Notes: generated by a model from the letters alone, not told the origin. A stretch of DNA of 64,000 nucleotides from Epithemia pelagica (GCA_946965045.2 OX337237.1:620001-684000), one strand, 5' to 3'; positions 9,717-60,832 are shown, counted from the first letter of the stretch. Numbers and translations: made by a program.

Positions 9717-9785
9717 GGTGGTTACGAGGAGGTGTTGTTGTTGTAGCATGGAAGTTCTTCCAACTCCTCTCGTGCTGCCTAAAGA

Positions 9786-24300: not shown

Positions 24301-24599
24301 GCCATATGATGCAGTCGTAAAATTTGAAAAGCACTTTGGTCAAGCTCTTTCATGGTTCTTCCACTTGGAGAAGGAGAGTCCCAGTCTAGAATAGGGACCA
24401 CCACATGGCTACCGTAGCCAATGCGCGACCGCGTTTGCGAGTGACGTGTTGGAAGCAAACTTTTTTCACAGCAAGAAAAGCATTCCCCATAGCGATGAAA
24501 CACATCCACGCCACGGCTGCTTCTCACTGCCAATTGGGGCTTCATTCACCAAGTCGCATCGGCAACGGATTCAATCCATCCGAGACAGATTCAAAAAAG

Positions 24600-24886
24600 T
24601 CGCTTGCTCTTCTGCCGGAGCGCGAGGATTACCTGTCGACGTGGCGATTCACGTTGCGGCGCAAGTCTGTGCCGATTGGATCTTGGAACAAGCAGCCACC
24701 ACCCACAACGACAGCGAAGACGACACCAACAAGAAGAAGGACACTTCAATTCCAACCACCGACCAGGACGACGCGAATCCTGGCGCCACGGTCGTATTTG
24801 GACTCTTGGAACACGCCCATGCCGAACAATTGGCGGCCGCTCTGACGGAGAGATTGGAAGCGCGAGAGCAACCACAAGAAGAATGA
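24600..24886 (+). pseudogene. Macro-domain gene, 3' fragment
   Basis: AGARGLPVDVAIHVAAQVCADW…VVFGLLEHAHAEQL matches the C-terminus of 50816..51883. Confidence 0.8.
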
Positions 24887-25436
24887 GTTGGACCAAGCCG
24901 CTGACTCCCTACCTAGAGGTAGCTGTGGGTGTGATCGTCCGTACCAATTCCACACACACGGGGGAGATGGTGGCGGAACAACAGAGGTTCCGAATCCACA
25001 CGCATCCGCACGACGATGACGATCTGTGTGTGCGTCCAAAACCCGTCACGACCCCCCATACACAATAAGCCATACACCAAGACACATACGCATACGTGCG
25101 CCCGAGCGCTAGCCTCCTCACTAGATCTAGAGGATGGCGGTGGAGGAGGATTGGTCTCTTGAACTCTGTGTGTGTGTTGAGTTTCTCCATCCCCTATATT
25201 CCACCAGCGTTCTAGGACTACAGCAGTCAATGCCACAACCGTGTGGGAGATCTGCCAAGTTTTCTCGTCAACGATCGGCTCACAGACTCTGTACCAAAAC
25301 CTGAGAAACAACAGTTTTGTGGATCGTGGACACACTCCCGGATCGGACTACCTATACTACCCAAAACCCAACCAACGGTTGTGCAAGAAACAACCACATT
25401 GTTTCTTCCATAGTCGCTGGATGACACAGTTTTAGG

Positions 25437-26573
25437 ATGGAGGATGTAAAAGAGCAAGCACGTTTGTCTGGACTCGTTTTGGGCAACAATCACGATGAAT
25501 CACGATGGAGTTTCAATGAAGCCGGAATTCGTGAGCGATGGTGGAACGCATCGGTTGTGGTACATGCTCCTTACAATGAAAAGGAAGAAATTATTGTCGT
25601 GTTGGGGGGCCACATATACGGGGCTTTGGATCCGGATCCTACCACAACAGTTTTGCTTCTAAAAAATAGTGATGGAAGCGAACACAAGCGAGGTCCCAAG
25701 ATGAACAAACAGCGAGTAGGACTTGCAGCGGTTGTTTGTAACGGCTGTGTCTACGCCATTGGAGGACTTCTTCAGTATTCTATTGAGCGGATTGAAGTCT
25801 CAGATTTACTGTCAAGTGCCTATTTGAACAAGACTGAGAAGAAAACACCGTGGAAAATATTGCAGTGTCGTTTGTCTACTGGTGGTTCATGCTCAGCTAC
25901 CGTGGTCCAAAACAGGTACATTGTAATTGGTGGAACAGATTGTAATGGAAATGTGGATATTCTTGACATAGCTCAAGCAAGTCAACCTTTCATTTTCCAA
26001 GGACCATCCATGAATGTTCCTCGTATCTACTTCGGAATGGCGGCCATTGGTTCACGTGTCTACGTCATTGGTGGAAAGAAGATTATTGGAGGACATGAGA
26101 TGTTAACTTCCGTCGAATACTTGGACTTGTCGGCTGATTCAGGCAACGATGGAAGTGATTTTCAAGAATCGACCCTTGCACCTTCTTTGTCATGGAAAAT
26201 GCACAATAATCTGGTTCTTTCTCTTCCTCGTTTCAGACATTCTGTTGTCCGCCTTGGAACATGCCTGCTTGTGGTCGGAGGTCGTAGTGACGATCGATTT
26301 TCTGTTGAAAATGAGGGTGACGCCAGAGTGCGTTTCGTGGAGGTTCTTGACACGAAACACAATAAAGTCTGGAGGCTTCCTGGAATGACAAAAGGACTAG
26401 GCGGGCATTTCGCAGCAGTTGCTTATTCCAATGGGATTATTGTTAACAATGAATTTGCTCTTGGAGATGAGTTGAAACCCTGCCAGACCTTTGAAAGGTT
26501 TCCATTGATGGATAAGAACTCTGCCCTGTACAAGCTTCTGCTGGATGGTCCTTCATTGAGACAATTTGATTGA
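25437..26573 (+). CDS. Kelch-repeat beta-propeller protein, copy A
   Basis: Repeated GG…Y/V..IGG…VEYLD…W…PR kelch motifs; 378 aa, open. Confidence 0.88.
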   Translation: MEDVKEQARLSGLVLGNNHDESRWSFNEAGIRERWWNASVVVHAPYNEKEEIIVVLGGHIYGALDPDPTTTVLLLKNSDGSEHKRGPKMNKQRVGLAAVVCNGCVYAIGGLLQYSIERIEVSDLLSSAYLNKTEKKTPWKILQCRLSTGGSCSATVVQNRYIVIGGTDCNGNVDILDIAQASQPFIFQGPSMNVPRIYFGMAAIGSRVYVIGGKKIIGGHEMLTSVEYLDLSADSGNDGSDFQESTLAPSLSWKMHNNLVLSLPRFRHSVVRLGTCLLVVGGRSDDRFSVENEGDARVRFVEVLDTKHNKVWRLPGMTKGLGGHFAAVAYSNGIIVNNEFALGDELKPCQTFERFPLMDKNSALYKLLLDGPSLRQFD

Positions 26574-29500
26574 CTGTCAGCATTAGATGATACTTGTGAC
26601 CCATCATAGTACTGAAAGATGACTGGAGTTGTGTTCCTCCCTCTTTTTGCCGCTGCGAGAGTTCGAAAGACCTATAATGATGCCGGCAGTCCAGAGACAT
26701 TTTTCATCCGAGTTACGATGGAAACCATCATCGTTTCGTTTGCCCTCCTTGTACAATAGGAGTAAAGAATTAGTTGTAGGAGAACTTACTCCTACTATAT
26801 AGGAGTAATAGGAGTAGGAACCTTTTGTGACTTTTGATTGACTCTCTCGACACATAGCTAGCTAGTAAATGCGCGACCGGATTGCCGAGTGACGTGTTGG
26901 AAGCAAACTTGGACTCCAACAAAAGCGTTCCATCCCTCCCTTCAGTTGAATCGACTAGAAGCTTGACGACAAATTTTGGGTCTTTGGTGAATGTTTTTTG
27001 CGTTTGAATTACCCGCCTGAGACAGGCGACCCACTGTAACCAAACATTTGTCGACACAGACCAGCCGACACAGGTTGATTGTGTCTCCAAAGTTTGAAGG
27101 ATAACAAATGCTGCATTTTCCCAGCCATCGTCTAATATGAGGTTGTGTGCAAGGAGAATTAAGGCTCACATACCCCTTCAGCATGAAACAGGGTTTGTCC
27201 TTATTCTCGTCCTTGGCGATGCACGCAAATTGTGCAACCCTTTCAAACAACCGTGTCAGGTATGTAAGCGACTCCTCCCTTGCGCTTTCGGCTTTTGCCT
27301 TCTCCCCTCGCCGGTTGTAATTAAAGAACACCCTAAAAACATAATGTTTCGTTGCTGCAGTCATTTTTTTCTTAATCGGTAACTCTTTCTGCAACCCTTT
27401 CATTTTATGAGAACAATGGACACCACCCCTGAGTCACCAGATCTTTGTCTACGACAAGATACAGTAATCGATATGTGGCCAAATGCATCAACAAGAAAAG
27501 CTGCAAAGATCCACTGCATCATCCCAAAGATTATCTGCCTCGTCTCCCAACAGAAATTGTAAATTCTCAAAAGAAACTATAACGCGCCCTTGGCTGCGCT
27601 CCTGGATTATTTTTTGGGCCCCAGCTCGCGCTGATTTACAGAAGAGGCCTTCTAGAGCAGCCTGGTTATCGACATTTACGCGAACACAAACAGATGCCGC
27701 AGGGTGCAGGTGCAAGGCCCCATGGAAAGTTTTGTGCTGATCAAATGTAACGGCAATTGAATCAGGAGGAAGGTCATCCAGTTTTCGTACCGTGAACATG
27801 CTGAAAAGAGCCACGACAACATGCTGAACTTCCGGAAATCGATTATTTTGAAGGACTGCGCGAGCCTTGTTGATGGTTTCTGGTATGTTTAGATGACCAT
27901 GGACTCGTTTGCGTTGATCGGCTATCAAAACATAATTGCCTGGATTCCCGTCCAGTTCCAGTGTGTAGAAGATATCGATTCCCTTGCCGTTGTCGCCATT
28001 CAATACAACCAACCCTTCTTTGATCCAGTTTACTGGCCTCGGGTAGTCCTTAAAGAGAATCGAAGCAGGCAAGGAATCATTAAGTGGCTCATTCATCTGA
28101 ACCACCCGCATTGGCTTGAGACGGACAGTAAAATTGGACACGTTGGTCTCTGCACCATTGAAGAGCTTCTTCAGTGTTGAAACGTTTGTAGCCGATGTGA
28201 TACAAAGCGCATTGATACGAAGCGCAACGAAACAAGCGCCAAATAGTTCCCATTGCTGCCAAGGAGCATTCGAAGGATTAAAAACGTTGTTATCCACAAA
28301 ATCCCCAAGATACTTCAAAGCGTCCATGAAAGCGTCTTCTGCTGGGGGCAACCTGTGATTGCTTTTGTCCACTTTGCTCAGATGATAGAAGAAGCAATAT
28401 GGAAGTTGAAGCCTTCTGTCGTCGCCAAGGATGCAAACAGAGCCATCACGGAGACGTCTAAAAGAGAGATGTTTGATCTTTGATTCTTCAATTCTCGCAA
28501 ATGGCGTATCCTCCTCCGTGACTGTTGCCCCGTTGACTGAGTAGGCCACCAACCAAATAAGCTCGCGTAAGGTAAAACCTGTTTTCTCTTTCCTTTTTTT
28601 TGCTTTTGGCGTTACATCGCTTCTCGGAACGGTGCTGTACACATTATCGAAGAATTCTCCGAACTTTTCTTCAAAGGTGTTTTTGTACTCTTCTTTCGCC
28701 GAATGCGGTGATTCATCTCCATTCGTCTTCTGCCATGTGAGGCATTCGTCTGCATATTCTGTGCATGGGCGTGGAACACCACCCAGAAAGAATAGATGTC
28801 TGCAAAAAATATCTTGCAGGAGAAGTTCTTTCATGCCGTCGCCTCTTCCATACACCGCCTTTCTCATTGCCTCTGTGTCGAGCAGTGGCATTCGGACCCG
28901 CTTAGTGCTTATAGCCGCTGCGTATGCATTTGACGATGCTGAGGCTGCCAATGACATCTTTGACCAGTCCGTACCCGCAAACATGGGAAGCATCACCACA
29001 CTGTTTTGTTTTGTCATTTCACTGAACATAGCATCGAGAAAATTCGCCAACGCATCTTCCCCGTCGACATGATTTGGGGGAATGCGTTGATACTCATCGA
29101 TCCCAACGAAGAGAGCACATTTGTCTTGATCATTTAATCCAAGAACCCTCTGAATTACTTTAAAAACGTCACCAAGTGTGAGTTCATCGGCATTCCTTGG
29201 CAACGATGTCCAAAAGTGTTGCCAACCATTTAACTTGCTGTTTCTTTCAAGAAAAATAGCATAGAGAAGCCGCCAAGCGAAGCCAGCATGGGCACCCATA
29301 GACCTCTCCTCAGATACCACCGAATGGCCATTTCCATAACTCAAGACAAGCGCCAACCTTTGTTTTGTAGGTGGAAAATTTACATCGCTCCAGATATTTG
29401 CATCGTCGTTGAATTTCTTCACCCACTCATCCAACAAACGGGTTTTGCCAATGCCGGACATTGCAGAACAAACAGGAAAGGGATAATCCCTTCGATCGCT

Positions 29501-29850
29501 TTTACCCTTTGTAGCGGATTCAAATAGTTTTTTTAGACAACTTTCGGTTGTTTTCATCGCTTGTTGGCGGCCTTCAAGGGTAAACTCCATACTTTCAGGA
29601 GACAGTAGATGAGCGCCAGAGGCCAACACCGCTTGGTCGTTCATACGTTCTTTCAACCATGCGAACAACGCATCCGCTGATGAAAGCTTCAAATGTTTTC
29701 CTGTTGGGATCTTTTTGAGACTAAGCTGAACAGAGTTTGAGGCAGTTGGATGGGCTGCAACCATAGGATTGGACACATTGGACGTCAATGGCGTGGAGGC
29801 GGGAAATTGTTGGGACATCATCTTCGGCGGCGAGGTGGAGGTTAAGGTCG
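26568..29850. repeat. 3.28-kb segmental duplication, copy 1 (partner 31436-34718, offset 4868)
   Basis: All ORFs in the block recur at +4868 with near-identical translations; boundaries read by eye. Confidence 0.95.
26770..27364 (-). pseudogene. CRESS-virus Rep-like (HUH-fold) ORF with altered catalytic motifs; probable +1 frameshift in a T6 run near 26995
   Basis: KHYVFRVFFN…FACIAKDE…MLKGYVSL…WLGKCSI…GDTINLCRL…TVG follows the spacing of circovirus Rep motifs I-III, but HxQ and YxxK are replaced. Confidence 0.55.
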
Positions 29851-29947
29851 TGGTGGTTCGTGGTGTCGACCCCTGCCAAGCGTGACAGGGTGACACGGCA
29901 AGCAAGAGCATCGTCCAAAACGACAAAACAAGAAACAAAGCATTCAT
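27488..29947 (-). CDS. Crinkler/RHS-like P-loop NTPase plus restriction-endonuclease-fold protein, copy 1 with signal peptide
   Basis: Walker A SGIGKT, Walker B FVGIDEYQ, GGVPR, and C-terminal WELFGA…GIDIF…DQRK. The likely start is MNALFLVLSF… at 29947; the track ORF extends upstream to 30163. Confidence 0.78.
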   Translation of the reverse strand: MNALFLVLSFWTMLLLAVSPCHAWQGSTPRTTTTLTSTSPPKMMSQQFPASTPLTSNVSNPMVAAHPTASNSVQLSLKKIPTGKHLKLSSADALFAWLKERMNDQAVLASGAHLLSPESMEFTLEGRQQAMKTTESCLKKLFESATKGKSDRRDYPFPVCSAMSGIGKTRLLDEWVKKFNDDANIWSDVNFPPTKQRLALVLSYGNGHSVVSEERSMGAHAGFAWRLLYAIFLERNSKLNGWQHFWTSLPRNADELTLGDVFKVIQRVLGLNDQDKCALFVGIDEYQRIPPNHVDGEDALANFLDAMFSEMTKQNSVVMLPMFAGTDWSKMSLAASASSNAYAAAISTKRVRMPLLDTEAMRKAVYGRGDGMKELLLQDIFCRHLFFLGGVPRPCTEYADECLTWQKTNGDESPHSAKEEYKNTFEEKFGEFFDNVYSTVPRSDVTPKAKKRKEKTGFTLRELIWLVAYSVNGATVTEEDTPFARIEESKIKHLSFRRLRDGSVCILGDDRRLQLPYCFFYHLSKVDKSNHRLPPAEDAFMDALKYLGDFVDNNVFNPSNAPWQQWELFGACFVALRINALCITSATNVSTLKKLFNGAETNVSNFTVRLKPMRVVQMNEPLNDSLPASILFKDYPRPVNWIKEGLVVLNGDNGKGIDIFYTLELDGNPGNYVLIADQRKRVHGHLNIPETINKARAVLQNNRFPEVQHVVVALFSMFTVRKLDDLPPDSIAVTFDQHKTFHGALHLHPAASVCVRVNVDNQAALEGLFCKSARAGAQKIIQERSQGRVIVSFENLQFLLGDEADNLWDDAVDLCSFSC

Positions 29948-30675
29948 GATGAATGAAATCGGTGTTTTCGTGGATAGATTCTTGACTTGTTGGTTGTTGT
30001 TCGAGAGAATCTCAAGACGTTGTCGTTGTTTGTCTCTTGGTGGTGGTGAGAAGGAGAGTGGTTCTTGTTTTGTTCTGTGGAGGGAGGTTTGTCGTTGAAG
30101 AGAGGGAGAGGAGGAGAACTCGTTGGATTCTCTTTTGGCTTGTTGGTTGCAGTGTCTCGTCATTGTTGGTCGTTGTCTTAGAGTGGTTCTTTTGCTCTCA
30201 AGGAAGGTTGTTGTTCTTGTTGTTCTTGTAGTTGTTGCAAGAGAGTCTCTGGAAACTCGCTCGCTCGCCTTGTCTTGTTTGGAGTGCCCAAAGGGATGAC
30301 AACCACAACTATACTATCCTAAATCGTGGCTATGCACACTGAACCGTATTGAGTACGAGTTAACAATGCGAATACGACATTTTTTCGACAATCACGACAT
30401 TCTCACGACAGTCATCAGGACATTCAAGGCCACAAAGTCGTCTTACTCCCATTGTCGGACGACATCGTCACGACAACCACGACGACAGGTAGATGAACGC
30501 TATCAGATATCGTTCCATTCTATCCACCGAAAGCAATCCCCGCAACAGCATCACCATGGCCAAGGGACGATTCAACAAAGGTAATGAATGCTTCCGATGA
30601 TCACTGGCTTCTAACAGACAAAGAGTTGACCATGCTAGTAAACTATTTGGTTTTCCTACTTGTCATTTTTGTCTC

Positions 30676-31435
30676 CTAAAACCTATCATCTTCCACATTG
30701 TCGGGATCCTCGAAGCAAGGCTCTATCGGGTCTCCACTGTCAATGATTTTTTCTTCCTGCTCAATTGCGTCGTCAGGTAAGTCTCCATCTTCAATGAAAT
30801 CATAAGCCTTTTTCCCGGTTTGATCAAAACTTGGGAATTTCAAATGCAGCATTTTAGATAGTTTGTCTCGGTTCCAATTGTTGGAATGCCACTTTCTGTG
30901 AGCCACAACTGTATGTGCGACGTCAAGCTCGAAATCCTGGATTTCCCAAGTGTCGTGTCCGTCACCGTGCATACCCTTGAGTGGTACGATCCATTAGGAT
31001 GCTTGGGATTGGGTCGGAGCTTTGCTGGCTCGCTTTCTGGCTGAAACTCGAGCATTTATGGCATCATACCGAGCTTTACGTTTCGATCCTTCCGGCGCGG
31101 AATAGTAAAGTTCGCTGTATATCCGCTCTGCTTGGTTTGTCAAAACCAAGTCATTGTCCCACATCTCGTCGAACGTTGTGATACTCTCCTGCTGGGTGGC
31201 GATCACCTCAAAATTCCCAGATCGGGAGAGGTTGTAGCTCCCTAGCACAGTGTATGTGTCAGTAATGACTGATTTTACATCAAGGGATGCTTTGCTGCTA
31301 CTATTGGCACCAAAAGTAGACATGGCGACCAACCGAATTTCGACATTCTCCAAGAGAGCCCTCTTGTTTCCAATCTCAGTGACCCACTTCGCAAGAGCTT
31401 TTCTGGTGTCCGTGGAACGATGCAGGAGAACTCGA
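30676..31435 (-). pseudogene. PLD-superfamily (HKD) nuclease-like relic
   Basis: SLDVKSVITDTYTVLGSYNLS fits HxKxxxxDxxxxxGSxN with His changed to Asp; in-frame stop near 30994; 5' end cut by the duplication junction. Confidence 0.6.
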
Positions 31436-34400
31436 GATTGACTGTCAGCATTAGATGATACTTGTGACCCATCATAGTACTGAAAGATGACTGGAGTTGT
31501 GTTCCTCCCTCTTTTTGCCGCTGCGAGAGTTCGAAAGACCTATAATGATGCCGGCAGTCCAGAGACATTTTTCATCCGAGTTACGATGGAAACCATCATC
31601 GTTTCGTTTGCCCTCCTTGTACAATAGGAGTAAAGAATTAGTTGTAGGAGTACTTACTCCTACTATATAGGAGTAATAGGAGTAGGAACCTTTTGTGACT
31701 TTTGATTGACTCTCTCGACACATAGCTAGCTAGTAAATGCGCGACCGGATTGCCGAGTGACGTGTTGGAAGCAAACTTGGACTCCAACAAAAGCGTTCCA
31801 TCCCTCCCTTCAGTTGAATCGACTAGAAGCTTGACGACAAATTTTGGGTCTTTGGTGAATGTTTTTTGCGTTTGAATTACCCGCCTGAGACAGGCGACCC
31901 ACTGTAACCAAACATTTGTCGACACAGACCAGCCGACACAGGTTGATTGTGTCTCCAAAGTTTGAAGGATAACAAATGCTGCATTTTCCCAGCCATCGTC
32001 TAATATGAGGTTGTGTGCAAGGAGAATTAAGGCTCACATACCCCTTCAGCATGAAACAGGGTTTGTCCTTATTCTCGTCCTTGGCGATGCACGCAAATTG
32101 TGCAACCCTTTCAAACAACCGTGTCAGGTATGTAAGCGACTCCTCCCTTGCGCTTTCGGCTTTTGCCTTCTCCCCTCGCCGGTTGTAATTAAAGAACACC
32201 CTAAAAACATAATGTTTCGTTGCTGCAGTCATTTTTTTCTTAATCGGTAACTCTTTCTGCAACCCTTTCATTTTATGAGAACAATGGACACCACCCCTGA
32301 GTCACCAGATCTTTGTCTACGACAAGATACAGTAATCGATATGTGGCCAAATGCATCAACAAGAAAAGCTGCAAAGATCCACTGCATCATCCCAAAGATT
32401 ATCTGCCTCGTCTCCCAACAGAAATTGTAAATTCTCAAAAGAAACTATAACGCGCCCTTGGCTGCGCTCCTGGATTATTTTTTGGGCCCCAGCTCGCGCT
32501 GATTTACAGAAGAGGCCTTCTAGAGCAGCCTGGTTATCGACATTTACGCGAACACAAACAGATGCCGCAGGGTGCAGGTGCAAGGCCCCATGGAAAGTTT
32601 TGTGCTGATCAAATGTAACGGCAATTGAATCAGGAGGAAGGTCATCCAGTTTTCGTACCGTGAACATGCTGAAAAGAGCCACGACAACATGCTGAACTTC
32701 CGGAAATCGATTATTTTGAAGGACTGCGCGAGCCTTGTTGATGGTTTCTGGTATGTTTAGATGACCATGGACTCGTTTGCGTTGATCGGCTATCAAAACA
32801 TAATTGCCTGGATTCCCGTCCAGTTCCAGTGTGTAGAAGATATCGATTCCCTTGCCGTTGTCGCCATTCAATACAACCAACCCTTCTTTGATCCAGTTTA
32901 CTGGCCTCGGGTAGTCCTTAAAGAGAATCGAAGCAGGCAAGGAATCATTAAGTGGCTCATTCATCTGAACCACCCGCATTGGCTTGAGACGGACAGTAAA
33001 ATTGGACACGTTGGTCTCTGCACCATTGAAGAGCTTCTTCAGTGTTGAAACGTTTGTAGCCGATGTGATACAAAGCGCATTGATACGAAGCGCAACGAAA
33101 CAAGCGCCAAATAGTTCCCATTGCTGCCAAGGAGCATTCGAAGGATTAAAAACGTTGTTATCCACAAAATCCCCAAGATACTTCAAAGCGTCCATGAAAG
33201 CGTCTTCTGCTGGGGGCAACCTGTGATTGCTTTTGTCCACTTTGCTCAGATGATAGAAGAAGCAATATGGAAGTTGAAGCCTTCTGTCGTCGCCAAGGAT
33301 GCAAACAGAGCCATCACGGAGACGTCTAAAAGAGAGATGTTTGATCTTTGATTCTTCAATTCTCGCAAATGGCGTATCCTCCTCCGTGACTGTTGCCCCG
33401 TTGACTGAGTAGGCCACCAACCAAATAAGCTCGCGTAAGGTAAAACCTGTTTTCTCTTTCCTTTTTTTTGCTTTTGGCGTTACATCGCTTCTCGGAACGG
33501 TGCTGTACACATTATCGAAGAATTCTCCGAACTTTTCTTCAAAGGTGTTTTTGTACTCTTCTTTCGCCGAATGCGGTGATTCATCTCCATTCGTCTTCTG
33601 CCATGTGAGGCATTCGTCTGCATATTCTGTGCATGGGCGTGGAACACCACCCAGAAAGAATAGATGTCTGCAAAAAATATCTTGCAGGAGAAGTTCTTTC
33701 ATGCCGTCGCCTCTTCCATACACCGCCTTTCTCATTGCCTCTGTGTCGAGCAGTGGCATTCGGACCCGCTTAGTGCTTATAGCCGCTGCGTATGCATTTG
33801 ACGATGCTGAGGCTGCCAATGACATCTTTGACCAGTCCGTACCCGCAAACATGGGAAGCATCACCACACTGTTTTGTTTTGTCATTTCACTGAACATAGC
33901 ATCGAGAAAATTCGCCAACGCATCTTCCCCGTCGACATGATTTGGGGGAATGCGTTGATACTCATCGATCCCAACGAAGAGAGCACATTTGTCTTGATCA
34001 TTTAATCCAAGAACCCTCTGAATTACTTTAAAAACGTCACCAAGTGTGAGTTCATCGGCATTCCTTGGCAACGATGTCCAAAAGTGTTGCCAACCATTTA
34101 ACTTGCTGTTTCTTTCAAGAAAAATAGCATAGAGAAGCCGCCAAGCGAAGCCAGCATGGGCACCCATAGACCTCTCCTCAGATACCACCGAATGGCCATT
34201 TCCATAACTCAAGACAAGCGCCAACCTTTGTTTTGTAGGTGGAAAATTTACATCGCTCCAGATATTTGCATCGTCGTTGAATTTCTTCACCCACTCATCC
34301 AACAAACGGGTTTTGCCAATGCCGGACATTGCAGAACAAACAGGAAAGGGATAATCCCTTCGATCGCTTTTACCCTTTGTAGCGGATTCAAATAGTTTTT

Positions 34401-34718
34401 TTAGACAACTTTCGGTTGTTTTCATCGCTTGTTGGCGGCCTTCAAGGGTAAACTCCATACTTTCAGGAGACAGTAGATGAGCGCCAGAGGCCAACACCGC
34501 TTGGTCGTTCATACGTTCTTTCAACCATGCGAACAACGCATCCGCTGATGAAAGCTTCAAATGTTTTCCTGTTGGGATCTTTTTGAGACTAAGCTGAACA
34601 GAGTTTGAGGCAGTTGGATGGGCTGCAACCATAGGATTGGACACATTGGACGTCAATGGCGTGGAGGCGGGAAATTGTTGGGACATCATCTTCGGCGGCG
34701 AGGTGGAGGTTAAGGTCG
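31436..34718. repeat. 3.28-kb segmental duplication, copy 2
   Basis: Direct repeat of 26568-29850. Confidence 0.95.
31638..32232 (-). pseudogene. CRESS Rep-like ORF, copy 2
   Basis: Duplicate of 26770..27364, including the T6 run. Confidence 0.55.
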
Positions 34719-34794
34719 AGACAGAAACAGGAGGAGGAGGCAAAGACTTCTGCCGCTTCGAAGGCGATTCAGATTCATTCTGAACAAAGCTCAT
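32356..34794 (-). CDS. Crinkler/RHS-like NTPase plus REase protein, copy 2 (no signal peptide)
   Basis: Identical to copy 1 from TLTSTSPP onward; unique N-terminus MSFVQNESESPSKRQKSLPPPP. Confidence 0.8.
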   Translation of the reverse strand: MSFVQNESESPSKRQKSLPPPPVSVSTLTSTSPPKMMSQQFPASTPLTSNVSNPMVAAHPTASNSVQLSLKKIPTGKHLKLSSADALFAWLKERMNDQAVLASGAHLLSPESMEFTLEGRQQAMKTTESCLKKLFESATKGKSDRRDYPFPVCSAMSGIGKTRLLDEWVKKFNDDANIWSDVNFPPTKQRLALVLSYGNGHSVVSEERSMGAHAGFAWRLLYAIFLERNSKLNGWQHFWTSLPRNADELTLGDVFKVIQRVLGLNDQDKCALFVGIDEYQRIPPNHVDGEDALANFLDAMFSEMTKQNSVVMLPMFAGTDWSKMSLAASASSNAYAAAISTKRVRMPLLDTEAMRKAVYGRGDGMKELLLQDIFCRHLFFLGGVPRPCTEYADECLTWQKTNGDESPHSAKEEYKNTFEEKFGEFFDNVYSTVPRSDVTPKAKKRKEKTGFTLRELIWLVAYSVNGATVTEEDTPFARIEESKIKHLSFRRLRDGSVCILGDDRRLQLPYCFFYHLSKVDKSNHRLPPAEDAFMDALKYLGDFVDNNVFNPSNAPWQQWELFGACFVALRINALCITSATNVSTLKKLFNGAETNVSNFTVRLKPMRVVQMNEPLNDSLPASILFKDYPRPVNWIKEGLVVLNGDNGKGIDIFYTLELDGNPGNYVLIADQRKRVHGHLNIPETINKARAVLQNNRFPEVQHVVVALFSMFTVRKLDDLPPDSIAVTFDQHKTFHGALHLHPAASVCVRVNVDNQAALEGLFCKSARAGAQKIIQERSQGRVIVSFENLQFLLGDEADNLWDDAVDLCSFSC

Positions 34795-35413
34795 TTTCGC
34801 AAATCAGCAGCAATAGATTGTGTCTCAGTAACAGCAGAGTTTGTTTGTTTTTCCCTTTCTGAGCAGAGTTTGTTTTCTTTTGGGTGCCTCCACTGACTGT
34901 TTTGCGTGTGAGAAATGCAATAATTGTGCGCCCCTGGTAACGAGAAGCGTGGATTTGTACTGTACTGTACATAGTAGTCTATATTGCGTTTCGTTTGGCG
35001 AGCGCATGACAGTCAGGACCGATATTAGAGCAGGCCGAGCCTGTGTATTCAACCCCTCACATTTTTCCGAAAGAGTCCCTCGGAAACTCCAAACCGGTTG
35101 ATACTGTCACCCAACAAATAGCGCAATCTGCAGTTCGATAATCCGGAAAATCACGTTTAATCTGTCTACTTGTACTCAACAAGCAGGCTCGCGCTCTTGG
35201 TCTGTCACTCATCCGCAGAAGATCCCTCTTGGAGTCGCCCAATGACTCCAAAACGGGGTCCTACCGCTCTGTGTGTCAACCGTCGTCGTCGGGCAAACAT
35301 GGCATCCGGTTTCGACTTTGCTTCGAGACTCATAAAAATCAAACCGAAACAACCGAAACAACCAAAACAACCCTTTCTATCAACACAACCAAACATACAA
35401 GAAACCTCTCGTC

Positions 35414-35623
35414 ATGCCCATTGAAACCAAGGAAACAACGAATGCCACTACGACCAGCAAGACGTTCACCGAGCCGCTCGAAAAGGTGTCGACCCACTTT
35501 TTGGTCGTGGATCGCAACTTGCGTCCCGAAGGAGTTCATTTTGCCGCCGAAGGTGGCTACTACATTCCACCCACAAACTGGAACAAGAGTGCCGCCGTTC
35601 GACCGACCGCCACGGCCAAATAG
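35414..35623 (+). CDS. 69-aa microprotein, copy 1 (unknown family)
   Basis: Paralogue of 36582..36794 with many synonymous differences; conserved CTCATAAAAATC upstream. Confidence 0.75.
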   Translation: MPIETKETTNATTTSKTFTEPLEKVSTHFLVVDRNLRPEGVHFAAEGGYYIPPTNWNKSAAVRPTATAK

Positions 35624-36581
35624 AAAGAAAACAAGTACTACATGGCAGATACATATATTGACCAAGAAACATATGATTCAGACTCAAGACGCACTTGAAA
35701 CCACGAATGTCCTTCTCAAACAAAAAGATTGATCCGTTCCACAGGGATTCCTTGTATATTTATCTGCCTATCGTTCCCTGTACCATAAAACGCAACAGTC
35801 CATGTAACTTCTTGTATTAGAAATACCATTTTAAAACTGAGTATATGGTCGATCCACTCCACGACACTACTAGTGATTTCAGTGTCATCTTCACGGGGCG
35901 GTTCAGCAATGAGGAAGGACGTTTGTCCAGCTCTCTCCGTGGGGAATCATGATTTCAAGAGCTCGAACCTTTTGAGCGGGGGAAAACTCGCTCCAAGACC
36001 ACATCTAGCTACTCCGAGTAAAGATGCGCGATCGCATTTCCGTCTTGGAAGCAAACTTGGACTCCCCAAGAACAGCATTCCATCCACAGAGGAGTAAGTA
36101 ATGTATCTCGTCTCTATTAGAGATGGAACAGCCCAGATTATCTTCACGGATCCAATGGACGATCGTACCGGCAATCCACTGCTTTGGTCTCTTATGAGGA
36201 TGGGTGTGTTGGTTGTTGGTTCGTCGGGTGGAAAGCGATTCGTTGACGCGAAGAAGAGATGTTCGGTACGGACATGCCTTTTCGGATTCTCATTCCCAAT
36301 GAATGATTACCGCTGGAAATGTATCCATCTGTTCTATTCTTTCCTGCACAGCACACTGACAACTGAGCGCTCGGATCCTAACGTTCCAATCCCCCAAGAG
36401 GAATGAGAACCATCACACCGGGGGAGACGCGAACCTTCGTCCATGTGTGTCAACCATTTTCGTCGGGCAAACATGGCGCATCCGGTTCAACTCATAAAAA
36501 TCAAACAAACACCCCCCAAAACACTAGAACCCAGCACAACCAAACACAGACAAGAAACTGTTCGAATCCTCCACTGTCGTC

Positions 36582-36794
36582 ATGCCGGTCGAAACCAAGA
36601 ACGAAACGAAACCAAACACTACTACCAAGATGTCCACCGAGTCCGAGAACAAGGTATCCACGCACTTTTTGGTCATTAATCGAAACTTGCGTCCCGAAGG
36701 AATTCATTTCGCCGCCGAAGGAGGTGGCTACTACGTCCCACCCACCAACTGGAACCAGAATGCCGCCGTTCGACCGACGGCCACGGCCAAATAA
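36582..36794 (+). CDS. 70-aa microprotein, copy 2
   Basis: KVSTHFLV.(D/N)RNLRPEG.HFAAEGG…YY.PPTNWN…AAVRPTATAK is shared; one in-frame 3-nt indel; TAG versus TAA stop. Confidence 0.75.
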   Translation: MPVETKNETKPNTTTKMSTESENKVSTHFLVINRNLRPEGIHFAAEGGGYYVPPTNWNQNAAVRPTATAK

Positions 36795-37634
36795 AAAGAA
36801 AAAACTACCAGTCTACTTACTACATGCCAGCAGAGACACATGTACTGACCAAGAAACCCATGATTCATACTCCTCAAGCCAGACGCACATGGAACCAAGA
36901 CGCACGAATCTTCTTTTGAAACATCAAGATACACGAGCCACGGGGATACCCTCTGTATACCTATCGGCATATTGTATATCGGCATATCCTTCCTCCTGTT
37001 ATCACAAAAAAACACAGTCCCTGTAACTACTAGAGTACTACCATTCCAAACTATCTCCACTCCACGACACTACTACTACTAGGTAGTGATTCCTCCTTCT
37101 CGCGTATCGATCCGCGTGAGTGCCATCCCTCTGCCTCACGATGGTATACGGTTCCGCAATGGGGACAAAGCACTTTGGTCCAGTCTATACCGCGGTAGGT
37201 AGGCGGCTTTAGTGCCCGGAAACTATAAGCGCGCCCAGGGGCTTTCGGAAAGCGCTCCCACACAAAACTCGACAGACCAAAAAACCCGCGCGAGTGACAT
37301 CCTCTCCCCGCGGATCAAATCCTCCACATTGATACACAACAAAACACAACTCATTGGATTGTGTGGTCTTGCTTCTCGAAGTCTTTCCCCCTATATTCAT
37401 CCTCTTTCTTCTCCACAACACTGCAGAACGGACGAGAACCAAGGCGAGAGAGAAAGAGAGAAAGAAAGAGAGAGAGAGAGTTTCATTCTGCCTGGAGAGT
37501 TTTGTGGTGGAGGAATACCCGGTTCCGTTCGTGTCCCTGTGGAACCCACACTCTTTCTGTGGCGCTTCGTTTGTTGGAACGTCGAGTGTCTTGCTGTTGT
37601 GGAATCCGGATCGTTGGAACCAACCACCGAGAAG

Positions 37635-55942: not shown

Positions 55943-56344
55943 GGTGGTTGACGCCATGAAGAACTTTGCCTCCATCCAGGAACAAGACGGCCTTCTTGTA
56001 CGAGGCCCTGAGGGCCAAAACTCCATGGGGAAGGAACAATCAACGGACCAATGGGGAAGGAACAATCAACGGAACCAAACAATCGAAGACATGGACCGAA
56101 AAAAAGTGGACCAAATGTAGGCCCTTGTCGCTCGACTGCAGATTTCTCGAGTAATACTTTTCTGTGTGCGTGTTTCGTACAAAACGATGATGGTTTCGAT
56201 CGTAACTCGGATGAAAAATGTCTCTAGACTGCTGGCATCATTGGGTCTTTCGAACGCTCGCAGCGGCAAAAAGAGGGAGGAGTACAACTACATTCATGAA
56301 TTTCAGTACTATAATGGGTCACAAGTATCATCGAATGCTGACAG

Positions 56345-57475
56345 TCAACCGAATTCTGGCAATGAAGGACCGTCCAACAAACGCTTGTACACAGCAGAGT
56401 TCTTATCCATCAACGGAAGCCTTTCAAAGGTCTGCCAGGGTCTCAACTCATTTCCAAGAGCAAGCAGTTCATTGTATACAATCCCATTCGAATCAGCAAC
56501 TGCTGTGAAATGCTCGCCTATTCCTTTTGTCATTCCAGGAAGCCTCCAGACTTTATTGCGTTTCGTGTCAAAAACCTCCACGGAACGCACTCTGGCGTCA
56601 CCTTCATTTTCAACAGAAAATCGATCGTCACTACAACCTCCGACCACAAGCAGGCAAGATCCAACGCGGACAACAGAATGTCTGAAACGAGGAATGGCAA
56701 GAACCAGATCCTTGTGCATTTTCCATGACAACGTAGATGCAAAGGTCGATTCTTGAAAATCACGTCCATCTTTGCCTGAATTAGTCAACAAGTCCAAGTA
56801 TTCAACAGAAGCAAGCTCCTCCTGTCCAATAATCTTCTTTCCACCAATGACGTAGACACGTGAACCAACGGTCGCCATTCCGAACTGGTCACGAGGAACA
56901 TTCATGGATGGTCCTTGGAAAATGAAAGGTTGAGTTGCTTGAGCTATGTCAAGAATATCCACATTTCCATTACGATCTATTCCATCAATTACAATGTACC
57001 TGTTTTGGACAGCCACAGCTGAGCACGAGCCATCAGTAGACAAACGACACTGCAATGTTTTCCATGGTGTTTTCTTCTCAGTCTTGTGCAAATAAGCACT
57101 TGACAGTAAATCTGAGACTTCAATCCGCTCAATAGAATCCTGAAGGATTCCTCCGATGGCGTAGACACCGCCGTTACAAACAACCGCTGCAAGTCCTGCT
57201 CGCTCTTCATTCATCTTGGGACCTTGCTTGTGTTCGCTTCCATCACCATTTAGAAGCCAAACTGTGTTGGTAGGATCCGGATCCAAAATCGCGTTTATGA
57301 AGCCCCCCAATACGACCATAATTTCTTTCTTTTTATTGTAAGGAGCATGTACCACAACCGATGCGTTCCACCATCGCTGACGCATTCCGATTTCATTGAC
57401 ACTCCATCGTGATTCATCTTGATTGTTCCCTAAAACGAGTCCAGACAACCGTGCTTGCTCTTGAACATCCTCCAT
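56345..57475 (-). CDS. Kelch-repeat protein, copy D
   Basis: Paralogue of A-C; 376 aa, open. Confidence 0.88.
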   Translation of the reverse strand: MEDVQEQARLSGLVLGNNQDESRWSVNEIGMRQRWWNASVVVHAPYNKKKEIMVVLGGFINAILDPDPTNTVWLLNGDGSEHKQGPKMNEERAGLAAVVCNGGVYAIGGILQDSIERIEVSDLLSSAYLHKTEKKTPWKTLQCRLSTDGSCSAVAVQNRYIVIDGIDRNGNVDILDIAQATQPFIFQGPSMNVPRDQFGMATVGSRVYVIGGKKIIGQEELASVEYLDLLTNSGKDGRDFQESTFASTLSWKMHKDLVLAIPRFRHSVVRVGSCLLVVGGCSDDRFSVENEGDARVRSVEVFDTKRNKVWRLPGMTKGIGEHFTAVADSNGIVYNELLALGNELRPWQTFERLPLMDKNSAVYKRLLDGPSLPEFG

Positions 57476-57869
57476 CCTAGAACTGTGTCATCCAACGACT
57501 ATGGAGGAAACAAAGATTGTTTCTTGCACACCTGTTGCTTGGGTTTTTGGAGTGTATAGTCTGCCAGTTCCACGATCCGAGGTCCGTTGTTTCTCAGGTT
57601 TTGGTGAAGAGTCTGTGAGTTCGATCAAAAACTAGGGCAGATCTCACACACGTTTGTGGTAGTCCTATAGTTGTATCGCGCTTTGTTGGATACTCGGCCA
57701 CCAAAGGCCCTAGACGGAGTCTGGGTTTTTGGTTTGCCTGTCAGACCCAAAGTATCACTCCACCAAAACAACTGCGAATTTCCTCTGTTCCAGCACACTT
57801 TTTGTTTTGTCACAAAGGGCGATTCAAAACCGCGTGTTTTTGAGTGCTAACTCTCTTGAGGGAAGGATT

Positions 57870-58790
57870 CTATCACCTTTTGCGTTCACACACGGAAAAA
57901 GTTCGAACACTGCCAGGATCTCCCTCTTCTTGTGGGTCTTGCAATGCCCACTGTTTTGCCATGAGCGGTTTTCACCGTTCACAACCCTGGGAGACATGCC
58001 GTCGTGTTGTCCTTGCTGTTTGCTCTTTTGAGTCGTTGCCCTATACTGTTGTAGAGTCTGATTCTGGATTCGTTCTTTTCAAAAAATGTCAGAGGGAGGA
58101 CGATGGGTCCAAGACTGCTTCTTGTGCTTGTGTTTGGGCTTGGACGACCAAATCCTCTTGTTGTGGCGGAACCGTAGTAGTCGATCGAATGTGGACCGTC
58201 GAATCGACCAAAAAGAAACAGAACAAATAGTACGTTTTCCCGATGTGGTTCGATTTGCCAAGTTGATCGGTTGGTTCTTGAACAATGGAACGAAAGCCCA
58301 ATTTACCTCCCTGAACATTGGTACATTCCAAACAACAACAAGCCGCTGCCATAATTCGTTCTCCCAATCTCCCTTCCACATGCCATACACCACCGTCATA
58401 ATAGGACGACAGGGAAGGAGTATCTTCGTCTGTAGTCTTTTGGTCGTGTTCGGGTTCGAGTTCCATGGATGCAATCGAAATGTGGGAATTGTGGGAGGCC
58501 GAAAATTGGTCGCGTCTTGATACCATTGCACGTAGTACTCGACAGGGTCGTCTTTATTGTTGCTGCTTCGGTTTCGTTTTTTTTGCGACTCTGCTGCTGT
58601 TCGTAGTGGTCTCGTTTCAGGGGTTCGTCCCTTTCACCAACGGTGACGCTCCCGAGCCGAGGGGGGCGTACGATAGAGTACCGTCCAGCATGGTGTCGTC
58701 CAGAATCTCAATGTTGCTGGCCGCCAGTTTCCCCTTCGACCATGTTTGGGGGCATTGGTATGGACGACCAAGACAACAGCTACCTACTCG
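57870..58790 (-). pseudogene. DUF4246 relic (cassette D)
   Basis: VWHVEGRLGERIMAAACCCLE, QGGKLGFRS and STTTVPPQQ; preceded by only the last ~60 bp of the Macro gene (about 58810-58868). Confidence 0.75.
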
Positions 58791-59455
58791 AGGTAGGTAG
58801 TAGAAGCGACATGGTCTCACTCATTCTCCTTCTTGTGGTGGTTGTCGCGCTTACAATCTCCCCACCAGGGCCCCTAGGTAGTCGCACAGCACACGTGTGA
58901 TTCACACCACCAGGTGTAAAGGAGAATTGATTTCAGATTCCTTGCAGGGTTCTTCTTTTACTAGAGGGTTGCTGTTACTAGGATTCCAGTGTTTTTTGTG
59001 CCATGTTCACTCTCTCTCTCCCGTCTCCATTCGGTACGGTGGATCGTAGGTACTATAGGTAAGAGTCTGCCAGGATGTCAGTTTCGTGGTTGGCAAACGT
59101 TTGGCTCGAACCACCCATCCGCGAAACAGATCACACAAGGAACAGCAGCTCCATGGCTCCCACCATCCTGCAATAAGAACAGAGGGAAACTCATGGATGC
59201 ATGGAATGATACACCTCCATCAGAGACTGTTCGACTTGTGTTTGTTTCGGTAAAATCATGTCCTCCAGCTGTCTACCTAGAACAACGAAACGAGCCATGC
59301 CATGTCCCACCCAGGAGCAATGCCCAGACACACCCAAAGGGAGAACCTGATTCAAATCCAAGGCATGGTCCGTAAACAGGTTGTTCTTGTGTCATGAGCC
59401 CTCTGCCGGACAAACGCTGCGGAATGGGGATCCTGTTGCCGAACAAACTGTTAAC

Positions 59456-60832
59456 TCATGGTGCCTTGTTGTCCAACGGTTTGGTGCTCATCTTCTTGTC
59501 CATTCGTCGGTTCCAAGGACTCCAACCATGAGCATGTTGTTGTGGTTGCGGGTGGTGGGGACGTGTTGGTTGTTGTGTGGGCTGTGGCAAGGTCAAGTGG
59601 GGGCGTGCCGGTTTGACTTGGGCAATGGCCGTGGCCTTGGCTTGGACGAGCCGGGCCTTGTCCACGTGTCCCAAGTGTTGATAGGATTCCGCCAAGCGTT
59701 CGCACCATTCCGCCACGACGCGCGATTCGGGAGCGACGGCCAATTCACGGGTAATGGCCTTTTGATAATACACGACCGCCTTGCGATGATTGCCCTGTTG
59801 GGCCAAGACAGTCCCAATCGTCCCATCCAACAAGACTTGCAACAAGGTATAATCGGAGAGGGTATCGCCACTGTAGGGGAAGGATGTCGTCCAGTGACTG
59901 GGATACGGTGAAGAATGTTTCGTGGTTGTTGTGGTGACCGCCTCCTCCTGGGAGACGGCATCGGTCGTGGTCAAAACCACGCCTCCACACGACGAGGCGG
60001 AGGATGCCGTCGAGGTGGTGGTGGTATGCGAATGCATGGTGGAACCGTACGACGACGACCAGGAATGACAAAATTCTTCGAGTTCCAGTCGTTGTCGTTC
60101 GGCCGTTTGCAAAATATCGCGCGCCTTGGCCAAGTATTCGCCCTGGGTGTGCAAAATGGCCAGATTGAGGTAAGTGCGGGCCATGCTGGCCGACGCCGGG
60201 GCCCAGTGTTGTTTAATGTGTTGGGCGCGGGTATGCAATGCCACGGCCCGCTTCACGTGTCCCAATTGTTGCCAGACAATGGCCAAATTGGTACAGGTCG
60301 TGGCCACTTCCATGGATTCCTCCGTTTCGAGTCCGAGACGGGCACATTCGCCTTGTCGCAAGACCAAGGCGGCTTCCAAAAAGTATCGGGCTTGGTGCGG
60401 TTTTCCACATTGCGACAAGATACAACCCAAATTGGACAAGGTCCGAGCCACCGATGAGGCCGGCAATCGACTGGCATCGTACGTGGAAACGGTTGTCAAT
60501 TGTGATTCTTCTTTATGAGGGCTGGTGGATTCCTTCTCGAGTACTTCTGATGATGATGACGATGATTGTCGTTGTTGATCGAGCAATCGTTGTTTCATGG
60601 CCAAGGCTTGTTGCGCACAGCTATGGGCTTGTTGATACTCGCCGAGACGATAGTGAAATTCACAGAGTCGATCCAAACACAAGGCCGCCTTGACGCAATC
60701 GGATTTCAAGTAGAGTTGGCGAGCCTTTTGATGCAAGGCAATGGCTCGATCAAAATCTTGGTAATTTCGGACCGCTTGCATTCCTTCTTCCATACACTTG
60801 ACGCCCTGTGCACGCGTCGACAAATTGCCCAT
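59456..60832 (-). CDS. TPR-repeat protein
   Basis: Repeats such as VARTLSNLGCIL…A…LEAAL, VATTCTNLAIVW…AVALHTRA and AEWCERLAESY; MG start; TATAAA-like GTATAAAG about 45 nt upstream. Confidence 0.85.
   Translation of the reverse strand: MGNLSTRAQGVKCMEEGMQAVRNYQDFDRAIALHQKARQLYLKSDCVKAALCLDRLCEFHYRLGEYQQAHSCAQQALAMKQRLLDQQRQSSSSSSEVLEKESTSPHKEESQLTTVSTYDASRLPASSVARTLSNLGCILSQCGKPHQARYFLEAALVLRQGECARLGLETEESMEVATTCTNLAIVWQQLGHVKRAVALHTRAQHIKQHWAPASASMARTYLNLAILHTQGEYLAKARDILQTAERQRLELEEFCHSWSSSYGSTMHSHTTTTSTASSASSCGGVVLTTTDAVSQEEAVTTTTTKHSSPYPSHWTTSFPYSGDTLSDYTLLQVLLDGTIGTVLAQQGNHRKAVVYYQKAITRELAVAPESRVVAEWCERLAESYQHLGHVDKARLVQAKATAIAQVKPARPHLTLPQPTQQPTRPHHPQPQQHAHGWSPWNRRMDKKMSTKPLDNKAP

Follow-up and report, generated by a model that had tools for sequence, protein, structure and literature searches.

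A Macro-DUF4246-Kelch array in the diatom Epithemia pelagica, probably formed by segmental duplication and reshaped by unequal recombination around an older gene neighbourhood

Tandem arrays that evolve by birth and death, with unequal crossing-over and gene conversion among their members, are exemplified by plant resistance-gene clusters, and lineage-specific expansions of Kelch genes include the plant Kelch-repeat F-box families and the KLHL/Keap1 substrate adaptors. To our knowledge, hardly anything has been charted of immunity and self/non-self recognition in diatoms, and any candidate locus therefore deserves close scrutiny. Here, a stretch of 64,000 nucleotides from Epithemia pelagica (GCA_946965045.2, OX337237.1:620001-684000; hereafter the window, with positions counted from its first letter) was analysed, in which a cassette containing a Macro-domain gene, a piece of a DUF4246 gene and a stand-alone Kelch propeller gene recurs among genes of other types. 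A previous examination of the DNA, made without database searches (the sequence-only reading), had proposed that the cassettes and the toxin-like genes between them form a defence island.

The locus resembles plant resistance-gene clusters in its local paralogues, crossover chimeras, haplotype copy-number difference and pseudogenes beside intact copies, as well as in patchy sequence exchange and variable residues in predicted binding loops. Unlike those clusters, the window contains no NB-ARC, NACHT, LRR or TIR domain, and the amplified gene encodes a stand-alone Kelch propeller. With the plant Kelch F-box and KLHL/Keap1 proteins the amplified gene shares a six-blade propeller and membership of a large, fast-evolving, tandemly arrayed family, but its product has no F-box or BTB/BACK domain and consists of about 376 amino acids (aa) with a ~40-aa N-terminal extension only. 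In the genome of the diatom Seminavis robusta, large gene families are built by tandem duplicates (PMC7335047), and family growth driven by tandem duplication is common to that diatom genome and the present locus. A listing of the same paper (PMC7335047) gave 0 occurrences of Kelch, and the haplotype-level crossover product and the hitch-hiking of Macro and DUF4246 are specific to the window locus.

The locus is probably a lineage-specific array of segmental duplications that was reshaped by unequal recombination and gene conversion around an old housekeeping neighbourhood, and the array is best read as young and unstable. Duplications, a copy-number difference, a chimeric crossover product, pseudogenes and ancestral synteny were all observed.

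Cassette copies and the state of their genes

The recurrence of the order Macro, DUF4246, Kelch, noticed in the sequence-only reading, was confirmed: the minus strand carries three direct copies, and a fourth, partial copy is inverted. Self-blastn and a repeat search placed the cassettes within ~100 bp of the positions given there:

40904-44949, minus strand: cassette A, with Kelch A, a DUF4246 relic and Macro A (self-blastn and repeat search)
47915-52004, minus strand: cassette B, with the Kelch B pseudogene, a DUF4246 relic and Macro B (self-blastn and repeat search)
55990-58871, minus strand: cassette C, with Kelch C, a DUF4246 relic and the extreme 3′ end of Macro (blastn, tblastn and Pfam)
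24613-24957 and 25233-26742, plus strand: cassette D, inverted partial copy (self-blastn)

Cassettes A, B and C are direct repeats with pairwise identities of 84–88% in self-blastn, the spacing between A and B is 7010–7060 bp in the repeat search, and the similarity among A to D is far above chance expectation. As had been proposed, nearly all of the Macro gene is deleted from copy C, where blastn and tblastn detected its extreme 3′ end alone, and DUF4246 is absent from the inverted copy D, in which the last 100 Macro codons remain and no DUF4246 piece follows. A weak RVT_1-like open reading frame (ORF; 23116-24267, Pfam) lies close to cassette D.

The cassettes and the space between A and B contain the following genes and gene remains:

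41236-42366, minus strand: Kelch A, intact (read-through and Pfam)
48246-49379, minus strand: Kelch B, pseudogene with nonsense codons at 49281-49283 and 48561-48563
56345-57475, minus strand: Kelch C, intact (read-through and Pfam)
25437-26573, plus strand: Kelch D, intact, 378 aa, six-blade propeller, no stops from MEDV onwards
43776-44820, minus strand: Macro A, with an extra base in a G7 run near 44389-44402
50816-51883, minus strand: Macro B, intact, 355 aa
24581-24883, plus strand: Macro relic of cassette D, last ~100 codons (tblastn with aa 256-355 of Macro B, 69% identity)
~43046-43579, minus strand: DUF4246 relic of A (Pfam)
~49806-50653, minus strand: DUF4246 relic of B (Pfam)
~57885-58591, minus strand: DUF4246 relic of C (Pfam)
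45213-47172, plus strand: DUF4246 pseudogene between A and B (181 bits), overlooked in the sequence-only reading

All four Kelch copies begin with MEDV(Q/K)EQ and share the length of about 376 aa, and Kelch D is 87–88% identical to A, B and C at the nucleotide level (blastn). The Kelch domains were confirmed by Pfam Kelch_1 scores of 35–66 bits in A, C and D (maximum 65.9; cut-off 20.1), and the matches of the Kelch protein in the PDB were KLHL2, KLHL3 and Keap1. The two stops of Kelch B are nonsense substitutions.

The Macro assignment was likewise upheld by PF01661, with 33 bits for Macro B and 34.5 bits for the 3′ piece of Macro A against a cut-off of 22, and matches in the PDB were weak (E about 1e-3) and to enzymes of the MacroD/YmdB type. 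The sole lesion of Macro A is the 1-bp insertion in the seven-G run (44389-44402), which could be a true frameshift or a homopolymer error of long-read assembly, the latter being a realistic option. The ratio of non-synonymous to synonymous substitution rates (dN/dS, omega) between Macro A and Macro B is 0.39, which indicates that Macro A was constrained through most of its history.

The DUF4246 relics of A, B and C (PF14033) scored 39.5, 31 and 62.9 bits, respectively, above the cut-off of 26.7, and are C-terminal fragments that cover profile positions ~236–304 only. The longer DUF4246 sequence between A and B is 90–92% identical in nucleotide sequence to an intact 646-aa DUF4246 gene at locus L007 on contig ctg1308l, as compared with which it has lost 13 bp at one site and 1 bp at another, gained 2 bp and acquired in-frame stops, and Pfam finds its DUF4246_N and DUF4246 domains in separate frames; it is a pseudogene. 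None of the DUF4246 copies in the window is full-length and intact (about 600 aa). In sum, Macro B is the one clearly intact Macro gene, Kelch is intact in A, C and D and a pseudogene in B, DUF4246 is represented by one pseudogene and three relics, and two relics of Macro and one of a TPR gene complete the set.

A second version of the locus and the history of the array

Contig ctg1308l of assembly ERZ21939226, probably the assembly of the window too, bears the locus in a second version (L003 and L007) and represents another haplotype, a homeologue or a very closely related strain. Between positions 61405 and 35101 of the window the two versions are collinear, mostly at 95–97% identity, and the comparison covers the window right of 35101. 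Genes outside the cassettes that enter the comparison are:

37212-39248, plus strand: E2 ubiquitin-conjugating enzyme gene (UQ_con PF00179, 2.5e-21)
39922-40587, minus strand: gene for a 221-aa protein with a signal-peptide-like N-terminus (96% aa identity to L003, omega 0.37; no Pfam match)
52994-54481, minus strand: near-orphan gene for a 495-aa protein with blocks FISHRW / FFDNSCLPQ / WCLYEF
55547-55936, minus strand: TPR relic (tblastn 76% to aa 208-334 of the TPR gene; blastn 85.8% to 59832-60212)
59456-60832, minus strand: stand-alone TPR gene, 458 aa (TPR_10 1.7e-17, TPR_12 1.4e-16)
63313-64000, plus strand: 5′ part of a PP2C gene that continues beyond the window (tblastn)

In L003, the TPR gene is followed by cassette C, the 495-aa gene and a single further cassette, in place of which the window has cassette B, the DUF4246 pseudogene and cassette A; about 7.1 kb of the window (~43495-50604) is missing from L003. 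The DUF4246 relic and the Kelch gene of the single L003 cassette are orthologous to those of A (94.6%). Its Macro gene is a mosaic, being B-like at the sites that differ between A and B over approximately the first 900 alignment columns and A-like afterwards. Descent from an ancestor with one copy would have left the gene equally distant from A and B throughout, and hence the mosaic identifies an unequal crossover within the Macro genes of a two-copy ancestor. Kelch B entered the Kelch tree, and the tree only, with its two stops replaced by X; in that tree, orthologues from ctg1308l join A and C, one each, and B stands without a partner.

The number of cassettes is polymorphic between the two versions via non-allelic homologous recombination, and the locus provides a clear-cut case of unequal crossing-over between two chromosome versions in a diatom. 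The birth-and-death mode of evolution suggested in the sequence-only reading agrees with this difference in copy number, with the chimeric cassette that marks the crossover and with the several pseudogenes and relics.

A block at 35101-37500 matches the second haplotype at about 99.4% identity, as compared with 95–97% in its flanks, and starts exactly at the end of the synteny with L003 (35101). Two ORFs at 35229-35732 and 36403-37026 encode Thr/Pro-rich paralogues with 46% aa identity to each other and are 99–100% conserved between the haplotypes. The high identity of the block suggests a recent conversion, a recombination breakpoint or a young repeat.

Past the TPR gene, ctg1308l carries in this order a PP2C gene, the intact DUF4246 gene, a Macro relic (aa 63-132), a Kelch gene and a TPR relic, a layout that matches the unit of cassette A in the window, in which DUF4246 has one strand to itself and the opposite strand bears Macro, a DUF4246 fragment and Kelch. 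The amplifying unit would be about 7 kb long and have this composition. Elsewhere in the data, locus L005 (ctg1316l 28144-49283, probably the window's own contig) has five Kelch genes alternating with DUF4246 fragments and no Macro gene, with Kelch and DUF4246 at about 76% nucleotide identity, and locus L006 of the same assembly (ctg1334l 428702-449886) has eight stand-alone Kelch genes of ~380 aa in 21 kb. The Kelch family comprises more than 330 clusters at 90% identity, nearly all of them on long ENA contigs and many sharing a contig. The cassette is a local branch of a genome-wide family of Kelch tandem arrays, with or without DUF4246, and Macro is confined to this branch.

The E2 gene proposed earlier, a gene of housekeeping type, was verified by UQ_con (76.2 bits, cut-off 27), and the HPN...C motif is present in its translation. 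The window PP2C is 100% identical to that of L007 and 90% identical to that of Epithemia clementina (tblastn), and the best named relatives of Macro B among 236 matches, at about 43–47% identity, belong to Phaeodactylum, Fistulifera, Fragilaria, Epithemia, Mayamaea and Attheya, a spread of orthologues across diatoms of housekeeping type. In E. clementina (L013, JBGMNV010000087.1), the genes for Macro, E2 and PP2C are all found inside 7 kb, and the E2 is the orthologue of the window E2 (60% identity in the core); in the window, the three genes extend over about 27 kb with changed orientations. The Macro orthologue of Phaeodactylum (L011) is located among housekeeping genes, those for an SNF2 helicase, a Sec7 GEF and Tic22, and that of a second diatom (L004) among transposase genes. 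When the 21-kb Macro loci of Phaeodactylum, L004 and E. clementina were searched by tblastn, no relative of Kelch, DUF4246, TPR or the 495-aa protein was found.

Macro, E2 and PP2C would thus represent an older microsynteny, seen as three genes in two genomes, that was pushed apart by the Kelch/DUF4246 array and other genes. As Macro and E2 are neighbours of PP2C in Epithemia without Kelch or DUF4246, they appear to be long-standing occupants of the site and not effectors recruited to it. As a single unit was copied, the recurrence of the Macro-DUF4246-Kelch order has no independent weight for a functional association. A co-adapted immune system, to which the repeated order had been attributed, is not supported: the order is that of the copied unit, Macro, Kelch and DUF4246 are unlinked in the three other diatom loci, and Macro occurs in all three without the TPR and 495-aa genes as well. 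Unlinked genes in relatives and an origin by segmental duplication, which the sequence-only reading had itself named as evidence against a defence island, are largely what was found.

The array probably spread through the older Macro-E2-PP2C neighbourhood, in the course of which the resident Macro was copied together with Kelch. Unequal (non-allelic homologous) recombination and gene conversion would maintain and reshape the array, and the copies have decayed in complementary ways.

Selection was assessed by dN/dS between window genes and their ctg1308l orthologues (NG86), the intergenic divergence of the two versions being 3–5%:

TPR gene: 0.19
E2 gene: 0.24
495-aa gene: 0.36
221-aa gene: 0.37
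Macro gene: 0.49
Kelch A: 0.60
Kelch C: 0.95

The values indicate purifying selection on Macro and E2 (omega 0.24–0.49) and on the TPR and 495-aa genes (omega 0.19 and 0.36). Among Kelch paralogues dN/dS is 0.7–1.1, and the maximum-likelihood omega of the six intact Kelch copies is 1.06 (GY+F3X4). The level of substitution is similar in the Kelch coding sequences and in the adjoining relic and intergenic parts, but gap openings number 0–1 per 200 columns in the former versus 3–6 in the latter. In simulations of neutral substitution on the inferred tree, all six Kelch genes were free of stops in 0 of 5000 runs. The Kelch genes are not drifting freely.

Amino-acid variation in Kelch is clustered in short patches, several of them directly after the GG doublets of the blades, and these patches are presumably the counterparts of B-C loops on the ligand-binding face of Keap1-type propellers. 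In a split test, in which the codons that differ in one Kelch pair were measured in a different pair, omega was 1.4–4.2 for the hot-spot codons versus 0.5–0.77 for the remaining codons, from small counts and from pairs that partly share branches; synonymous divergence was similar in both codon classes. Variants are shared in a patchy manner among the paralogues, which points to gene conversion, and hence the split test suggests diversifying selection on Kelch and falls short of proof. Of the earlier description of the Kelch proteins as diversifying sensors, a compatible mode of evolution (omega 1.06, ORFs kept open, hot spots) has stood, and diversifying selection itself is not proven. The Kelch genes are likely to encode functional, fast-evolving ligand-binding proteins under a mixture of purifying and diversifying selection.

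Neighbouring genes of possible conflict type

Two genes predicted to combine a nucleoside triphosphatase (NTPase) with a restriction-endonuclease-like (REase) domain lie between cassettes D and A, within or overlapping a tandem duplication of the form X-Y-X:

26568-34718, minus strand: X-Y-X tandem duplication with a period of 4868 bp (self-blastn)
27488-30163, minus strand: NTPase-REase copy 1, 891-aa ORF; homologous body 27488-29863 (tblastn with aa 22-812, 99.5%)
32356-34794, minus strand: NTPase-REase copy 2, 812 aa; P-loop AAA+/STAND-like NTPase, winged helix and C-terminal REase-like domain
26942-27403 and 31810-32271: 153-aa ORFs, one in each X

The duplication was missed in the sequence-only reading; X corresponds to 26568-29850 and 31436-34718 (3283 bp, 99.97% identical in self-blastn) and holds in each copy the cassette tail, a 153-aa ORF and the NTPase-REase body. 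Copy 1 has lost the original first 21 codons, and its 5′ end reads into unrelated sequence. By eye, the resulting N-terminal extension of the 891-aa ORF (29864-30163) is hydrophobic and signal-peptide-like, with MNALFLVLSFWTMLLLAVSPCHA followed by W; use of the extension would direct the 891-aa duplicate, but not the parent copy, into the secretory or plastid route.

The 812-aa protein has 34 homologues, including those of the oomycete Aphanomyces and of Rozella and Lithocolla. Walker A residues G160 and K161 and Walker B residues D277 and E278 are invariant in 26 sequences, and D651, D670, Q671 and K673 (D651...D670-Q-x-K673) are invariant or near-invariant. An AlphaFold2 (AF2) model had a confidence score (pLDDT) of 81.6, with residues 1–70 predicted to be disordered. 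In Foldseek, the N-terminal two thirds of the model matched ORC/Cdc6, CED-4 and TnsC with E from 5.6e-6 to about 1.5e-4, and Pfam gave weak matches of the protein to AAA_16 and AAA_22. The conserved D651, D670 and K673 are located on consecutive predicted strands in a C-terminal alpha-beta-beta-beta-alpha-beta segment. The C-terminus had no sequence match in Pfam or the PDB, and a profile search of the PDB with the family alignment gave nothing useful. A scan of IMG/VR revealed no relative of the family, and an exact-product look-up of the 812-aa protein returned no record.

Most Crinkler C-termini consist of an NTPase, a helix-turn-helix (HTH) domain and an REase (Zhang et al. 2016, as summarised in PMC5289972). 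The 812-aa gene shares with this module the domain order, the Walker A/B motifs, the predicted AAA+/winged-helix fold, the C-terminal D...D-x-x-K motif on beta strands and the occurrence of homologues in Aphanomyces, Rozella and Lithocolla, and would therefore encode a Crinkler-type C-terminal NTPase-HTH-REase module, of which the nuclease is putative, the REase label having no profile or structure match. Unlike Crinkler effectors, it has no identified N-terminal header and belongs to the chromosome of a free-living alga. The presence of two NTPase-REase genes, as proposed earlier, is in keeping with the invariant Walker motifs, the predicted fold and the conserved C-terminal motif. That a free-living alga carries a Crinkler-type NTPase-REase gene, duplicated very recently, is a lead in its own right.

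The 495-aa protein had 10 matches among 1.84 billion representatives. Its ordered blocks, which correspond to FISHRW...DPDP, [FW]xDxxCxPQ and RxWCxxE in the family alignment, show some resemblance to the three blocks of HET; in that alignment and in a bacterial relative they are conserved as FISHRW, FYDYSCLPQ and WCxFE. No match to Pfam HET (PF06985) or TIR/TIR_2 was obtained at E ≤ 10, the 9 homologues had no HET match at E ≤ 0.1, and a profile search of the PDB with the family alignment gave none at E ≤ 10. Hence, from the earlier label of a HET-like gene, the resemblance of three motif blocks stands and membership of the HET or TIR Pfam families does not. An AF2 model built from 11 sequences reached a pLDDT of 43.6 with a low-confidence beta-alpha-beta arrangement; Foldseek gave none at E ≤ 0.001, and its matches were discarded as meaningless at that pLDDT.

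One eukaryotic relative of the 495-aa protein is fused to TPR_10/12. A bacterial relative (L015:7294-8433, JGI Ga0116226_10006413; hhalign probability 99.5%, E 1.6e-22) has the blocks FISHRW / DYSCLPQ / RGWCFTE, as in the 495-aa protein, and is located 1.2 kb downstream of the gene for a 1522-aa TIR-NACHT STAND protein (L015:1467-6035). Two further relatives (P0156 and P0160) are short transcripts without neighbour genes. The 495-aa protein may resemble HET (PF06985) and the TIR-like effector domains of NLR-type proteins in its three ordered blocks and in the low-confidence beta-alpha-beta arrangement, and the TPR-fused and the bacterial relative lend it some character of a conflict system. 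It differs from HET and TIR proteins by the lack of a Pfam model or PDB profile match, the structural model being too poor for a comparison of folds. Its domain family appears not to be described in Pfam, and this near-orphan domain, shared with bacteria and with a relative beside a TIR-NACHT protein, is a further lead.

The TPR pieces noticed earlier were recovered as the TPR gene and the TPR relic listed above. The 495-aa, TPR and NTPase-REase genes are likely functional passengers or neighbours, possibly related to conflict, that stand outside any Macro-Kelch system.

Competing explanations and other features of the window

A diatom innate-immune or conflict island, in which Kelch and TPR sensors are combined with Macro, HET/TIR-like and NTPase-REase effectors under pathogen-driven birth and death, is an unlikely explanation of the locus. 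It would account for the variation in copy number and the turnover of pseudogenes, for hot-spot codons at omega 1.4–4.2 after GG doublets in maintained Kelch ORFs, and for purifying selection on the 495-aa and TPR genes, as well as for the presence of a Crinkler-type NTPase-REase and of a HET-like motif domain with relatives beside a TIR-NACHT STAND protein and fused to TPR_10/12. However, the Macro-DUF4246-Kelch order recurs by copying alone and is missing in Phaeodactylum, L004 and E. clementina, Macro and E2 are conserved enzymes with ancestral PP2C neighbours, the DUF4246 pieces are relics, the NTPase-REase homologue of a relative (L001) is found among housekeeping genes, those for actin, an FGGY kinase and a peptidase, and Kelch arrays occur genome-wide without these partners. 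The copying and the long residence of Macro and E2 remove the main argument for a co-adapted Macro-DUF4246-Kelch system. Moreover, Pfam detected no NLR or TIR domain in the window proteins, PADLOC gave a marginal TPR match only and no convincing one, and neither PLD nor Rep could be traced. The 153-aa ORFs, formerly called Rep-like, had no match in Pfam (E ≤ 1), the PDB (E ≤ 10), a phage tblastn search or IMG/VR. Among the 150 ORFs that remained (stop to stop, at least 75 aa), Pfam found no Rep family and no PLDc, so that a PLD relic was not recovered, and returned DUF4246, Macro and a few marginal zinc-ribbon-type matches only; a regular expression for HxKxxxxD had six matches in unrelated chance contexts. 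A coherent defence island pairing sensors with ADP-ribose and nuclease effectors is unproven, being supported neither by neighbourhood conservation nor, clearly, by recognised immune domains. Several observations nevertheless weigh against an array of segmental duplications as the full account. The Kelch ORFs are clearly kept open at omega ~1, unlike in purely neutral duplication. Synonymous divergence between copies A and B is 0.29 for Macro and 0.08 for Kelch, which indicates a history beyond one duplication; the low Kelch value is assumed to reflect gene conversion or homogenisation of Kelch. Two Macro copies may be functional if the G7 lesion of Macro A is an assembly error. The neighbours include genes of conflict type, namely NTPase-REase and the HET-like motif protein with its TIR-NACHT-adjacent and TPR-fused relatives, and it may be more than chance that they cluster with Kelch genes that evolve fast. 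The Kelch genes and these few odd neighbours hint at a role in recognition or conflict, and the very large arrayed family of stand-alone Kelch genes, with variable hot spots in predicted binding loops, is a lead to follow. That the stand-alone Kelch proteins, with more than 330 clustered members in tandem arrays, form a recognition repertoire of the diatom lineage whose loops are diversified by selection and shuffled by gene conversion and unequal crossing-over, and of which this locus is a node beside conflict-type executioners, namely the HET-like motif protein with its TPR partner and the Crinkler-type NTPase-REase, is a speculative proposal with a small chance of being correct; if true, it would provide the first glimpse of a non-NLR system of innate immunity or allorecognition in diatoms.

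A transposable element that was repeatedly inserted and that constitutes, or carries, the ~4-kb cassette is very improbable. Although the copies are dispersed with different spacers, one of them is inverted, and retroelement remnants are nearby (the RVT_1-like ORF at 23116-24267 and, where L005 ends, a Copia pol), the cassette contains no transposase or integrase, the repeat search reported no terminal inverted or long terminal repeats at its ends, all close copies are local, the A-B spacing of 7010–7060 bp is that of a tandem unit, and the chimeric Macro of L003 is a product of homologous recombination. Even less credible are repeats created by the assembly, for example by haplotypes stitched in tandem. 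The window and L003 come from one assembly, and the X-Y-X duplications at 100% and 99.97% identity (17733/22385 and 26568/31436) could be assembly errors; the cassettes, however, differ from each other by 12–16% and are 94–96% identical to their L003 counterparts, which indicates that they are older than the split of the haplotypes and were assembled independently in two contigs, and the orthologues pair cleanly in the Kelch tree. An array of segmental duplications around the Macro-E2-PP2C neighbourhood hence accounts best for the cassettes.

A literature search retrieved no paper for DUF4246 and nothing relevant for HET or Kelch in diatoms, and Rfam and tRNA scans of the window returned nothing. 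To the left of the cassettes, direct repeats of 756 bp at 17733-18488 and 22385-23140 are 100% identical and 4652 bp apart. They flank a 1138-aa ORF (18464-21880) with no Pfam or PDB match; this ORF and the RVT_1-like ORF each end 25 bp inside a repeat copy, and the start of a Patched/sterol-sensing-domain gene (13883-17888, minus strand) lies within the left repeat. The repeats may represent a very recent duplication, a non-autonomous element resembling those with long terminal repeats or an assembly artefact. Further upstream, 6676-8288 and 9784-11357 form an inverted duplication (82% identical) with ORFs of 501 and 491 aa, for which no Pfam match and, for the 501-aa ORF, also no PDB match was obtained. 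An ordinary-looking gene for a copper transporter of the Ctr family (PF04145, 3.8e-18) is located at 12113-13024, upstream of the region studied.

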